This document shows positions 44,428-51,860 of a stretch of DNA of 64,000 nt, one piece after another. Each line of letters opens with the position of its first letter. Position 1 is the stretch's first letter. The notes below the pieces were generated by a model. The model saw only the letters and a list, made by a program, of their open reading frames with translations, had not been told where the DNA came from and searched no databases. Position numbers and translations under genes: made by a program. The DNA lies in assembly GCA_964057225.1 (NCBI GenBank), contig OZ059894.1, positions 6,076,001 through 6,140,000 of the forward strand, read 5' to 3'. This stretch comes from Auanema rhodensis (Eukaryota; Animalia; Nematoda).

Positions 44428-46674
44428 TTAACGTATCGTTTTCAGGTACTTCTGAAAAAGTTTAGTTTTAATTACGTTAAAGCTTGTTAGAAGGATAAAT
44501 TGAGAACACAGTGCATGAAATTGGGACTAGGAGAGGTTAAAAGTGCAACACAAAACATACTCAGAAGCACCCGCTTATTTAAAAAACCAATACTGAAATA
44601 AATTTTTAATTAGTACTGGGAACTGTGCGACATATATTTTTGGAATTAGGCTTAGTGTTTGGGGAGGTTAAACTAAGAGCACCATCACCGAGAATCCCCC
44701 CATCACTTGCCTGCATGAACATTCCGAAGACAATTGATAGAACAATTACCGGAAGACGTCCGAGCCAACCAACAATGCCTGGCATACCAATTCTTGTTCC
44801 AGTTAGAAGTTTCAAGCTTGATAACTTTTTGTCATCCATGGGTGGGTAACGAGCGCTATAACGAAATGGGTTAACATAGAGTACTTTGTTTTTCTCTGTA
44901 CGCTTGAAGAGCCTCTCCGAAAAATCCTCGCTTAAGAACAGCTTTTTCATGAGAGAATGTATCAAAGCCATATTTTCCACGATATCTTCCCATCCCAGAG
45001 GTTCCTACACCACCAAACGGCAAAGTATCAACTTAAAAGGAAAAATACTGAAGAATTACTTCGAAAATAGATACCTGTGATGTGCATGATTACATCATTG
45101 ATTGTCACTCCCCCACTGCTAGTTTCGCTGTATAATCTTTTAGCCTTGGCCTCATTTGTGGTGAAAATATAAGCAGCCAAGGGCTTCTCTCCTTTGTTGA
45201 TAAATTCAATAGCTTCTGATAGATCTCGGACAGTTATAATTGGAAGCACAGGCCCGAAAATCTGGAACACCAAATTTAAAAAAAAAAACTGAATAAATCC
45301 TACTTCATCTTGCATGAATGGATCACTAGCATTAACATCGAGAATGACTGGTGGAATGAAAAGATCATCGCGATCTCTTTCGCCGCCGCTGAACAAAACA
45401 GTTCCTTTGGTTTGATCAAGCAAAGACGAAATTCGGCTAAAAAAAAAGAACTTTGAACACTTCTTGCTTTCAGATCTCACTCGAAATGGCGTTGACTAAT
45501 AACACGAGAATAATCCTTAGAGGACTTGATATCTGTACCATAGAACTCAGTTAAATGTTTACGGAAAGAATCAATTAGCTTAAATACAGTTTTTTCTTTC
45601 AAAAAGGCATAATGTCATACCTTAGGTTTGGTTTTCTCAGAGACTAATATGTAATCGGGTGCGAGGCACGTTTGACCACAGTTTAACCATTTTCCCCAAG
45701 CAATACGACGACCAGCAATGTTCAAATCAACATCGTCTTCCACAACAACAGGGCTGAAAGCAAGCGATTTAATTCACAATATCAAATATATATATATATA
45801 TCAAAAGCATACCATTTACCACCTAATTCCAAAGTGACAGGTGTTAAGAATTTGGCTGCAGCAGCCATAATAATTTTGGCAACAGGAGGACATCCTGTAT
45901 AGAATATATGATCAAAACGTTCAGTAAGTAATTCAGTAGTTTCCGGAATGCCACCATTGATGCATTTAAGATATTCCTACAAAGAAAAACAAAGTTGATA
46001 AAAATATGGGAAGAATAATTAACCGGTTCAAAGTATTCGGTGAATAATTTTTCAAGCGTGCTAGCGGTATTAGCGGAAACTTCTGATGGCTTCACAATAA
46101 TAGTATTTCCTGAATATAAAGGTATATTAGCACTTGTTTCAGGAAGTTACCGGCAGCAATAGCTGGGACTAAAGGCAGAGTTAACATAGAAACAGGATAA
46201 TTCCAAGGAGAAATAATAAGAACAACTCCCAGAGGTTCCTTAACAGTCATTGGCTGATCAAGAGCATTAACTACAGTTTTATCAACCTAGAAGAAAAACA
46301 CAGTTATCACAAAATGGAATAAACATACATAGGTTGTCTGAGCCCATTTTTTCAAATTAGCAATAGTGTAATCTATTTCTTGGATCGTATTTCCTATTTC
46401 TAGTAGATATGTGTTCGCTGGGAGCTGAAATCAAGAAATAAATACAGTCTTCTGTAAAATTTCCGACTCTTTTATGATCTTTGTAAACAGCATCACAAAG
46501 TTCGTCAGAGTTTTCGATCACGAGCTTCTTCAATCTTTCCAATCGTGAGATTCTGCTTTCGATACTTTTGGTATTACCACTTCGGAAATACTCACGCTGC
46601 TTTAAAATAATCTGAAAGAAAATAGAGCAAGTCAGACAGAAATAAATGTATAATATTACGTTATGGTAGCTCAT
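44428..46674 (-). CDS. alh-4: Fatty aldehyde dehydrogenase (ALDH3 family), tail-anchored, alternative last exons
   Basis: [63 protein letters not shown] and [12 protein letters not shown]. Hydrophobic tail [15 protein letters not shown]. Confidence 0.9.
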
Positions 46675-47728
46675 AATTGGTGATGGCCAGCAGAGTCAGA
46701 ACGTGAAGAAAAAGTAAATGGAATGAGGGTCTGAAATGACATTGACTAGAAAACATGATAAGAAGAGAGTGTAGTCTACTCTTTCTTGATAACAAAAAAG
46801 ACGTAAATGAGAGAAAATCACAAAGGTGACAATAGTCAAAGTTTAACGAAACTCGAAGACCTAACCGGCAAACAATATTAGAAGTTTTAAAATACAGGCT
46901 AAGAAGGGCAATGAACTAGGTGTGTCTAATTATCTGATGGAAAACAATGTAGGAAACAAGAAACATTAGTTAAATAATTTTTTGCGCTACTATGATCGCC
47001 ATCTCCAACTCTATTGCGATACTTCACAACATGGTTTTAAATTAGAACCGGTTATAATGAAAATAAAGTAATGTATAGTATTTATTACTTGAAAAAAAAA
47101 TAGAAGTTTCACTGTTACTTGAAAAAAACTTACGTTTCAGAACAGTTATGAATTCCTTTTATTTTATAAGAAAATGTGTACAGTTGCAAACAACTATGTA
47201 TGAACAAGCTAATAATAGCCGATCTGTGAAAAACGATTTCGGTCGAGACTGGACTGTAAACAATGTTTTGAAATACTGTATGATAATACAAAAAGAAAGC
47301 GCGCTCCAAAGCTAATCAGGGTTCATACAGGGAGATGACAGCCCTTTAACGCTCTCTGGAAATTTAGTAATTTACAAAAATCTATGTTTTTTAAAGAATT
47401 ATTCAAAATTTTTCAAAATTTAAATAAGCAAGAAAACTAACATGAATTTACCTTTTTTTGAAGTTTTTGTTTCTTCAATAAAATTGTATTCAAAGCAGAA
47501 TTCGTATAAATCCTTTCACAAGTTGATGCAATTTTTCTGTTTAGGTTTTTTGTTGTTCCAAATAATCTCAACTTTGGTTAATCAGTAAGTTCTTACTGTT
47601 ATTTACTTAGTTCACTAATGTTCCATTTTATTTATGAGAAATTTTGTTTATATTATATTTTTATCTTAGTTCTCATAATTGTTGCTCTGTATCCCATAAG
47701 AACTGTCTTTGATAAAAGTATCAGATGA

Positions 47729-49472
<1,744 letters not shown>

Positions 49473-49718
49473 CCGCGTCTGGTGGCTGGCAGTGATCTTT
49501 TTTCTTCTCTTGTTTTTTGTAATTTCGCTTTTTTAATACAATTTTTGTTGTTCGTCCCGCAATTCCATAAACTATCAACCTCATTACTGATTGCCAGCCG
49601 GCCGCCGAGCACGTCGTCTTTACTTCGCCAAAATGTCGCTCTGCTCTGCGTTCGGATGCTCAGAACGCCCTGCATGGATTCAGTCTTTACGGAAGCATTT
49701 ATGGGTCGGTGGATATAG
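49473..49718 (+). other. Candidate stop-codon readthrough cassette of eRF1: UGA-C, 3' stem-loop and 81-codon in-frame extension
   Basis: TGA CCG CGT CTG GTG... stays open in frame to TAG at 49716-49718. Arm 49480-49496 is complementary to 49583-49607. Confidence 0.6.
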
Positions 49719-50332
49719 AGACATCACAATAATATATTAATACTTATAGGTTGACCGTTTTCAACTATATGTAGTCCTGAATGTAAGAGTTAACTTATAG
49801 GTTCTATTTGCAACTTCTATTATTTATCCTTGTTGGTTTTAATTATTATTCTTGTTAATGTATCGCTGTTGATGGGGATTGATAGTTTAATATAGGTTTT
49901 GCTGAGACGTAGTTTGTTATGAAATTTTCAAGTTTCGAACATTTTATCTAGTTTTTCGTTAGCTTGATTGGAATTAATACATCAAAATGGTTGGCTTCCA
50001 AACACCTAATTGCGCTGTGTTTTTTGATTGAGCGTGTTGTTTCATTCACTACAATTGGTGACACTCCATTTTAGGGTAGAATTGTTTTTATTTTTTCCTA
50101 TGGTCTTTTTCGAAAGTGGTCGGTGTTGCCATGTTGTGCCTCTCTTCATTTTCCTTCAAATATGTATTTGGGTTTCTTTGTCGGTGATCAAATTCTTAAG
50201 AGATATTCAAACTTTCTATAAATTGTTGCCACGAAATTTGTAGTTTTCCTTATCAGTTGTTAAACTGCACTCTATCTTATCAGCATGTTTAACATTCGTT
50301 TGTTAAATGTTATACGCCATTTTTAGTTCGTC

Positions 50333-51705
50333 ATGGTCGAGTTGAACACAACTGTATGTGCATCAGCAGCTGTTGTTGTTGTTTCTAGTATTGCTCTCTA
50401 CTTTTTCGTAAAAAAACCATGTTGTGGAAAGGTATACTTGCTTCTTTTGTAGATTTTTTTGTAAAATATAATTATAGAAAAAGCTTGTTACTCTTGTGAA
50501 TGATACTGAAAAATATTCTCTCATGCTCATTGAAAAGACTAAAGTAAGATTTACTAAAAAAAGTTGGTTTATTACTATCAATGGTTTAAGGTTAGTCATG
50601 ATACTAGAAAGTTCAAGTTCGCTTTACCAACTAAAAATCACACCTTAGGTCTTCCTGTAGGCCAACACATTTATATTTCTGCTAAGGTTGTTGTATTATC
50701 CATGAAATGCTTATATAAAAGTCGTTTATTTAGGTTGATGGAAAGCTTGTTGTTCGTCCATATACCCCCATTTCCAGTGATGATGATTTGGGATTCGTTG
50801 AGCTTATGATAAAGGTTTTTTTGATAGTTTACTTGCAGCTTTCATTGTAAAATCTCAACAGGTTTATTTCCGTGATGTTAATCCTAAATTTCCTGAGGGT
50901 GGAAAAATGTCCCAATATTTGGAAAATATGAATATTGGAGATTCGGTATGTTTAATTGATACTCATCCATTTTTTCAAAATATAGTTTTTGTTTCTCATT
51001 TTTTATGACATTTGTATTTATTAATTTGTTCTCCTGTCAACAATATGCTGTTATTTTTGAAGAACATCTGATTCTTGCAGATTGATTTCCGTGGCCCATC
51101 TGGACTAATCACCTATCAGGGAAATGGAAACTTTAATATTAAAGAGGATAAAAAAGCCTCAGGGGTCCTTAGAAAGTTCAAAAAGCTTTCCATGATAGCT
51201 GGAGGAACTGGAATTACTCCTATGCTTCAGGTTTGGAGATTGAACAAAGTAAGATTTTGTTCATGCGCTTAACGTTTTCAGATTGTAGCTGATGTTATGA
51301 AACATGAAAATGACAACACTGAAATTAAACTTCTCTTCGCTAATCAATCTGAGGAAGATATTCTTTGCAGGTTGATAGCTAATTCATTTAGCAATATTTT
51401 TATGTTTTTTAGAGAAGAGCTTGATCAGCTAGCCGCAGCTCATCCTAACCGTTTCCGTGTCTGGTACACAGTAGATAGACCACCTGCAAACTGGAAGTAT
51501 TCCAGTGGATTTATTACTGATAAAATGATCCAGGTGATCTTGTTTAAGTTTATTTTTAAAATTCTTATTTATGCAGGAGCAATTATTTGCCCCATCAGAT
51601 GATGGTGCTGTTCTCATGTGTGGCCCACCTCCAATGATCAACTTCGCTTGTACTCCAAATTTGGAAAAACTTGCTTATGATCCAGCTAATCGTTTTACTT
51701 TCTAG
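50333..51705 (+). CDS. NADH-cytochrome b5 reductase (CYB5R; hpo-19-like)
   Basis: N-terminal TM anchor. Motifs [67 protein letters not shown] and CGPPPMI. Confidence 0.96.
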
Positions 51706-51860
51706 TTCTTGTAAAATATCAAAATAAAGTAGTCAAAGAAATTTATTATATTTTGTATACATTCTCAGAGATCTGCTGAAATTATGAATAATAGGAGGTA
51801 ATTATAAAGGCACTCAATAGTTCAACAATATTTAAAGCATTTAAAACATTATTTTTCACA

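Follow-up and report, generated by a model that had tools for sequence, protein, structure and literature searches.

The stretch analysed here, 64,000 nucleotides (nt) of the Auanema rhodensis genome (contig OZ059894.1, positions 6,076,001 to 6,140,000; hereafter the window), carries the gene for the release factor eRF1, whose UGA stop codon is followed by a long open frame, a long-range RNA helix and a 3' untranslated region (3'UTR) intron. We are confident that these four elements form a conserved module, present in the window species and in at least four other nematode lineages, and we consider whether it may act as a sensor of termination capacity. The gene was identified through exons that match proteins with the Pfam domain eRF1_3, the homologues carrying eRF1_1, eRF1_2 and eRF1_3, and it is single-copy, as an exon query gives one match in its own 181-Mb genome. 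Transcript evidence comes from contigs of four runs of one study, which are spliced and therefore represent RNA; in one contig per run all nine coding-region introns are removed, and the coding sequence (CDS) assembled from these splice joints is 1326 nt long with a single terminal stop. The features on which the argument depends are the following, all on the forward strand:

47747..49472, forward strand: eRF1 gene, ATG to stop, 10 exons, 441 amino acids (aa), joints taken from RNA contigs
49470..49473, forward strand: UGA stop with C at +4, read from the sequence
49473..49704, forward strand: start of the read-through frame (77 codons and one further nt), lying in the same 3'UTR exon as the eRF1 stop
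49474..49497, forward strand: 5' arm of the helix, +2 to +25 after the stop, from duplex prediction; the homologous arm is gapless in all relatives
49498..49587, forward strand: helix loop of ~90 nt, U-rich, poorly conserved and without frame-0 stops, from sequence and folding
49588..49617, forward strand: 3' arm of the helix with the GC-rich core CCAGCC..GCCGCCG, from duplex prediction; a homologous core is found in relatives
49705..49749, forward strand: 3'UTR intron, 45 nt, GT..AG, phase 1, spliced in contigs of all four RNA runs
49750..49754, forward strand: end of the read-through frame, a codon split G/GU by the junction and then UGA at 49752-54, the next base again being C

An earlier note on this DNA had reported a TGA stop followed by C, which is what lies at 49470-49473, and a frame that stays open beyond it for 81 codons to a TAG at 49716-18. 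That frame exists in genomic DNA but not in the mRNA. The 3'UTR intron, which starts 232 nt after the UGA, holds the TAG, and in each of the four runs one contig spans both helix arms and then skips 49705-49749 (joint 49703/49749, cut +1); the frame of the spliced message therefore ends instead at TGA 49752-54, after 78 codons and 2 nt past the junction. The 3'UTR is GC-rich, as had been noted (46% over 49473-49718 vs 32% for the whole window), and this stretch is unique in the 181-Mb genome, so that the GC island is unlikely to derive from a repeat or transposon. Recoding of the UGA as selenocysteine was rejected on the finding that Rfam searches of window positions 47000-51000 and of four mRNA contigs from relatives (L007, L010, L011 and L012) gave no selenocysteine insertion sequence (SECIS) and no family above noise. 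A THAP-like small open reading frame (ORF) in frame +1 (ATG 49633; 49633-49704 joined to 49750-49800; 40 aa when spliced; beginning MSLCSAFGC) was also set aside, having no Pfam match and no conservation in relatives.

Over the window extension, two stops lie in frame +1, three in frame +2 and none in frame 0, the continuation of the eRF1 frame. The probability of 1-2% previously given for such an open frame proved too low, since 204 of 2000 dinucleotide shuffles (10%) leave frame 0 open. The proposed pairing between arms on either side of a long loop was confirmed: at -33.8 kcal/mol (z = -2.68, 1 of 200 shuffles), the minimum free energy fold of 49473-49615 holds the long-range stem, with the difference that pairing begins at +2 to +7 after the stop and not at +8. 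In the best duplex, 49474-49497 pairs with 49588-49617, and its energy of -32.5 kcal/mol is a value equalled by 2 of 100 shuffles and thus not significant alone, and the whole 251 nt folds at shuffle level (z = +0.17). With one shuffle in ten open and the full fold unremarkable, the window by itself is merely suggestive, and significance comes from the relatives.

Relatives were gathered by querying with eRF1 exons and looking up the contigs that encode the matches; taxon labels of contigs such as L007, L010, L011 and L012 are inferred from eRF1 similarity. The set includes three genomic contigs of one nematode (L002, L003 and L005), Strongylus vulgaris (L004), in which eRF1 and the neighbouring cytochrome-b5-reductase gene have the same synteny as in the window, a strongylid-type spliced mRNA contig (L007), chromosome V of Caenorhabditis briggsae (L009), two Caenorhabditis-type mRNA contigs (L010 and L011), Gongylonema pulchrum (L008), where the 5' arm is present and the remainder lies behind an assembly gap, and a spirurid-type mRNA contig (L012) with UGA, open frame and helix, from which no junction is readable. 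The eRF1 stop is UGA in 11 of the 11 nematode-type sequences examined; the expectation of a conserved UGA-C was borne out for the stop itself and not for the +4 base, which is C or U. Caenorhabditis, the strongylids and the nematode represented by L002 all combine the UGA with a long frame-0 ORF that crosses a 3'UTR junction and with a helix of 23-30 bp. Frame-0 lengths, spliced where splicing is known, are listed with the stops counted in frames +1 and +2 and the share of dinucleotide shuffles in which frame 0 stays open:

Window: 78 codons; 2 and 3 stops; 10%
L002: 114 codons; 5 and 9 stops; 0.9%
S. vulgaris: 254 codons; 8 and 8 stops; 0.1%
L007 mRNA: 192 codons; 11 and 1 stops; 0.8%
C. briggsae: 150 codons; 9 and 8 stops; 0.6%
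L010: 154 codons; 11 and 8 stops; 0.2%
L011: 153 codons; 11 and 9 stops; 0.2%
L012: at least 115 codons, to the contig end; 4 and 3 stops; 0.06%

Five lineages thus keep frame 0 open, bearing out the conservation foreseen in the earlier note, and do so though their loop sequences cannot be aligned with one another; Fisher's combination over the five gives an open-frame p of 4.6e-7, a value that is approximate because the lineages share ancestry, even if their loops no longer align. Two controls behave differently. The post-stop frames of neighbouring genes close in 4-9 codons, and in a truncated eRF1 duplicate of C. briggsae the frame closes after 46 codons while the helix is kept at -54 kcal/mol. 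The duplicate belongs to a tandem duplication of the eRF1 3' end and the b5-reductase gene (CP092624.1; L009 10001-10358 = L006 4001-4358), and it is annotated as a 103-aa protein (CBG18936 / L5515_008388) comprising eRF1 residues 334-441 between two b5-reductase genes. Coincidence helped by base composition, GC-rich arms and pyrimidine-rich loops seldom holding stops, would suffice for the window taken alone, with its 10% of open shuffles and its full-length fold at z = +0.17. As an account of the same frame being open in five lineages it is scarcely credible: the shuffle frequency is 0.06-0.9% in each of the relatives, their frames +1 and +2 each contain 1-11 stops, the two sides of the helix change together, and neither the control genes nor the dead copy follow the pattern.

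The helix was compared both within and between species. Per-species duplexes comprise 23-30 bp with bulges, at -32.5 to -47.9 kcal/mol and with loops of ~90-300 nt, and their z-scores against shuffles range from -2.6 to -7.1; in the spirurid-type L012, 18 nt of its own variant arms pair. The 5' arms are gapless in the alignment from the stop onward in all relatives. In a MAFFT alignment of whole 3'UTR segments (ten sequences, 394 columns) the 5' arms align and the 3' arms do so partly; eight of the ten rows are good, and those of the window and L012 are misplaced, so that the helices of these two rest on their own duplexes and on an arm alignment made from sequence alone. From the 394 columns RNAalifold predicts this helix alone, joining +7 to +14 with the distal core, with no broken pair in the eight well-aligned rows and with changes on both sides at +12 (G-C to A-U, four sequences) and at +14 (C-G to U-A, three sequences), the covarying stem pairs that the earlier note had proposed to look for. 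The sequence-only arm alignment gives a 13-bp consensus with an extra compensatory pair at +15, and across per-species duplexes +22 changes from G-C to C-G. Judged by this covariation, the helix is conserved. It starts at +5 to +7 in the consensus and at +2 to +5 in per-species duplexes, the lowest pairs of which would melt under a ribosome bound at the stop.

A conserved, covarying helix could also be, together with the other conserved 3'UTR blocks, an RNA element unrelated to recoding, whether protein-binding, concerned with stability or localisation, or folded so as to make the 3'UTR effectively shorter, the open frame then being a by-product. In Caenorhabditis the whole 3'UTR is 79% identical and hence more conserved than synonymous sites of the CDS (proportion of synonymous differences pS = 0.55), and different species share 93-100% identity over a ~90-nt block that follows the junction, both of which such an element would accommodate. 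We nevertheless regard it as unlikely, given that stops are avoided in one specific frame through unalignable AU- and U-rich loops (the combined p above), that Caenorhabditis indels are all multiples of 3, and that the frame begins exactly at the eRF1 stop and ends past every known or predicted junction. The dead C. briggsae duplicate, moreover, has retained the helix and lost the frame.

Splicing within the 3'UTR is a shared feature as well. In C. briggsae the intron is annotated (L009 4910-5039, 351 nt after the stop), and the L010 and L011 mRNAs have the same junction; a strongylid junction is seen in the L007 mRNA, with which the predicted S. vulgaris donor and acceptor agree. Wherever a junction is known or predicted, a second in-frame stop lies past it (+2, +95, +82, +99 and +108 nt), the range of 2-108 nt covering the window, at 2 nt, L002, L007, C. 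briggsae and L010. Polyadenylation ahead of the 3' arm, which the earlier note had named as a refuting outcome, is contradicted by the contigs: window contigs span both arms and the spliced intron, and the L010 contig carries a 24-A tail 13 nt after UAUAAA, ~560 nt past the eRF1 stop and ~96 nt past the second stop, which places polyadenylation far downstream of the 3' arm in that relative. The highly identical ~90-nt block lies right after the Caenorhabditis junction (L009 5040-5130; L010 1585-1680; L011 780-875). Loops of the same species are merely 47-67% identical, the few changes within the block are non-synonymous, and none like it is seen in the window or in strongylids; it is a second conserved RNA or DNA element.

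The position of the second stop calls to mind AMD1, in which read-through likewise enters a 3' frame of conserved length that serves a regulatory purpose and encodes no useful protein domain. Rare read-through ribosomes could stall at the end of the nematode extension and queue back, limiting translation per mRNA; the frame ends soon past a conserved landmark, its last 33 codons are almost invariant in Caenorhabditis, and AMD1 offers a precedent (PMC13025110). AMD1, however, requires a conserved arrest peptide at the tail end, and no C-terminal peptide is common to the nematode lineages: these parts are unrelated between lineages, the window frame ends 2 nt past the junction in unrelated sequence, and conservation within Caenorhabditis alone is at the nucleotide level, with no synonymous excess. 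Such a device, which would also leave the conserved intron unexplained, is in our view very unlikely.

In Caenorhabditis the indels of the extension are all multiples of 3, and its ratio of non-synonymous to synonymous change (dN/dS) is 1.0-1.6; over the last 150 nt of eRF1 the proportion of non-synonymous differences (pN) is 0, with pS = 0.55. No extension tested has a Pfam match, the window extension has no homologue in a search of 1.84 billion representative proteins, and the C. briggsae extension matched C. briggsae and two Caenorhabditis-type contigs, and no others. Between lineages the peptides, 78-254 codons long, cannot be aligned. The extension peptide is unconstrained, and its frame is kept open nonetheless. 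A functional, C-terminally extended eRF1 isoform produced by read-through would fit the long frame directly after the stop in all lineages and the peptide stretches that are identical within Caenorhabditis; we think it quite unlikely in view of the above, and also because those stretches fall on helix arms and on blocks conserved at the nucleotide level, the few changes in which are non-synonymous, and because the plant extension discussed below is nonfunctional too (PMC5397192).

The annotation of C. briggsae raises one further possibility, that of a separate small operon gene after eRF1 with its own start codon. A 120-aa hypothetical protein with an intron (P0212, L3Y34_008543; L009 4649-5141) is annotated there, and in the window the RNA contig joins eRF1 to the next gene in an operon-like manner. 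The annotated ORF, however, is simply what the read-through frame contains from an in-frame ATG to its stop, intron included, and is probably an artefact of RNA-supported gene prediction. No Met occurs in the L002 extension or in the pre-junction part of that of S. vulgaris, so the extension is not an independently initiated ORF; the first in-frame ATG of the window extension leaves 17 codons. Since it is in every case frame 0 that is open, directly continuing from the stop, and the peptide is not conserved, we find a separate gene highly improbable.

The closest parallel is the 3'UTR of plant eRF1-1, where read-through strips the junction complex and so protects the mRNA from nonsense-mediated mRNA decay (NMD), the eRF1 level setting the balance (Nyiko et al. 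2017, PMC5397192). [quoted passage not shown] The 3'UTR intron, which did not figure in the earlier note, is the element that the plant read-through/NMD circuit needs, and the nematode open frame crosses every known or predicted junction. Differences are also apparent. In nematodes the candidate stimulator is a covarying long-range helix after UGA-C or UGA-U, in place of the hexamer CARYYA that stimulates read-through in plants, the frame crosses the junction, whereas the plant second stop lies <25 nt upstream of the intron, and the extension is much longer (78-254 codons). Flowering plants retain an additional eRF1 gene whose 3'UTR is plain, and the window genome has a single eRF1; function was tested in plants, and the nematode module is known here from sequence and RNA contigs.

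The helix itself resembles the extended 3' stems that raise UGA read-through up to ~10-fold in alphaviruses. This group covers the alphaviruses Venezuelan equine encephalitis and Sindbis virus (VEEV/SINV), several plant viruses, and Drosophila headcase and kelch, the last by prediction (Firth et al. 2011, PMC3159437). Those stems comprise 11-14 bp, with spacers of 7-12 nt and loops of 100-268 nt (PMC3159437). Both groups have a UGA, often UGA-C in the known cases, with a frame that continues, a stem of at least 11 bp (the nematode consensus being 8-13 bp and per-species helices 23-30 bp) that starts a few nt past the stop, and two conserved arms around a long, poorly conserved loop, with compensatory substitutions (nematode +12, +14, +15 and +22). 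The known stems stand in a CDS and give a functional fusion protein, unlike the unconstrained downstream frame of nematodes, whose spacer is also shorter, with conserved pairs from +5 to +7 against 7-12 nt, and whose helices, with their bulges, are longer. Bacterial RF2 (prfB) offers a further likeness: as proposed for nematode eRF1, the factor gauges how active it is at a stop in its own mRNA, and less factor brings more recoding and hence more factor. In RF2, a +1 frameshift at an internal UGA makes the active protein; nematode eRF1 comes from normal termination, and recoding would alter the fate of the mRNA.

From these comparisons the following mechanism may be proposed. After the UGA, the 5' arm of the GC-rich helix begins at +2 to +7, and its 3' arm lies ~115 nt downstream in the window and 150-330 nt downstream in relatives; with a ribosome at the UGA, the upper part of the helix would sit at the mRNA entrance and raise read-through in the manner of the alphavirus and Drosophila kelch stems. 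A ribosome that reads through would move along the loop and the 3' arm, cross the exon-exon junction and stop just past it. Normal termination at the UGA would leave a long, junction-bearing 3'UTR, the type of feature that exposes mRNAs to NMD, and read-through would clear this 3'UTR of the junction complex and of UPF1, sparing the mRNA. Low eRF1 would then lead to more read-through, a stabler eRF1 mRNA and more eRF1, and high eRF1 to the reverse. We infer stimulation by the helix, the status of the mRNA as an NMD substrate and the response of the loop to eRF1. The termination-sensor interpretation of the earlier note is supported, and its parts differ in strength: read-through translation of the frame is probable on the grounds of conservation, and we lean modestly towards the full feedback loop through mRNA decay. 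On balance we favour, by a similarly small measure, the view that this 3'UTR does in nematodes what the autoregulatory one of eRF1-1 does in plants, through read-through and NMD, with an extended stem of the alphavirus and kelch type as its driver. For a homeostat of termination capacity acting on the single eRF1 gene in rhabditid nematodes, with the helix making the UGA leaky and junction crossing rescuing the mRNA, we consider the case evenly balanced.

Several observations, in addition to the modest statistics of the window alone and the indirect case for read-through, weigh against the termination sensor. UGA-C is not universal, as the +4 base is U in two lineages, and the plant CARYYA hexamer is not found after the nematode UGA, the hexamers there being CCGCGU in the window and UUGCGG, CCUCGU, UCACGG and CUAUAU in relatives. 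The introns of L002 and S. vulgaris are predictions. In L013, a JGI metatranscriptome contig with no taxon assigned, the frame closes after 33 codons following UGA-C, and L015, a more distant eRF1, has an AU-rich 3' region with no arms and a frame that closes immediately; lacking long frames, these two indicate that the module is not universal. L013 has a local hairpin (595-640, GGACCG..CGGUCC) ~8 nt past its UGA-C, which may be a different solution of another lineage. The RNA evidence consists of assembled contigs, which carry no transcript ends, depths or isoform ratios and which run into the next gene without placing the poly(A) site of the window species; if that site were at UAUAAA 50217, ~480 nt of 3'UTR would remain after the second stop. 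Longman and colleagues reportedly found in 2007 that NMD in C. elegans does not need exon-junction-complex proteins, so that the intron may act otherwise in nematodes than it does in plants. A version of the model based on 3'UTR length and displacement of UPF1 would still work, as read-through would also clear a signal of 3'UTR length or UPF1 load. In the part of the list of C. elegans NMD substrates that was available, erfa-1 is not included. Three transcripts from the cosmid that carries erfa-1 (T05H4.6), namely T05H4.15, T05H4.4 and T05H4.7, are among the SMG-2-bound mRNAs in File S1 of PMC5765348; T05H4.15, a possible counterpart of the erfa-1 3'UTR frame, was not used.

The ends and surroundings of the eRF1 transcript add some detail. 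Two RNA contigs begin with loose 5' letters, CCAAGTTTG, ahead of 47543, which match the end of the nematode SL1 leader, and a tttag acceptor lies at 47540-44, where they join; on the strength of these SL1-like ends joined at an acceptor, the eRF1 mRNA appears to receive SL1 by trans-splicing at a point ~200 nt upstream of the ATG. Downstream, the same contig in each of the four runs continues unbroken from eRF1 into the next gene (49755-51740), a cytochrome-b5-reductase-like gene with its ATG at 50333, its stop at ~51703 and AATAAA at ~51722. Two features lie between the genes:

49755..50324, forward strand: rest of the 3'UTR and intercistronic stretch, from sequence and RNA contigs
50318-24, forward strand: candidate trans-splice acceptor uuuuuag, 8 nt before the ATG of the next gene at 50333

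No AAUAAA was found between the eRF1 stop and 50333, where the variants AAUAUA (49889), UAUGAA (49918) and UAUAAA (50217) occur, the last ~100 nt upstream of the acceptor-like tttttag. The eRF1 and b5-reductase genes are accordingly candidates for an operon-like layout. Upstream of eRF1, on the minus strand at 45844-46700, ORF fragments with an aldehyde-dehydrogenase-like motif suggest an aldehyde dehydrogenase gene.

Previously recorded cases of release-factor autoregulation come from bacteria, giant viruses and plants, with no animal among them (PMC5397192), and full-text searches of the literature yielded the plant circuit and nothing on read-through or regulation of the eRF1/erfa-1 3'UTR in nematodes or other animals; an eRF1 read-through cassette in animals has apparently not been described. 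If the sensor is real, it would be the first animal release factor autoregulated by recoding. Such control would either have been invented independently a fourth time or be an ancient trait held in common with plants, and it bears on whether recoding is a solution that recurs in the autoregulation of release factors, from RF2 through giant viruses and plants to nematodes. Surveillance of mRNA in nematodes would then depend in part on a 3'UTR splice junction, although their NMD is held not to require the exon junction complex. The module would add a cellular, non-viral case to the long-range stems that stimulate read-through, and its frame, selected solely for openness, would represent a class invisible to screens for peptide conservation such as PhyloCSF; it also accounts for the likely mis-annotated hypothetical protein after C. 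briggsae eRF1. Its presence in clade V and clade III marks it as an old feature, and as a conserved cis-acting module it provides a genetically tractable handle in C. elegans and C. briggsae. More broadly, it bears on how animals set the level of eRF1 and, with it, genome-wide stop-codon fidelity and the strength of NMD.

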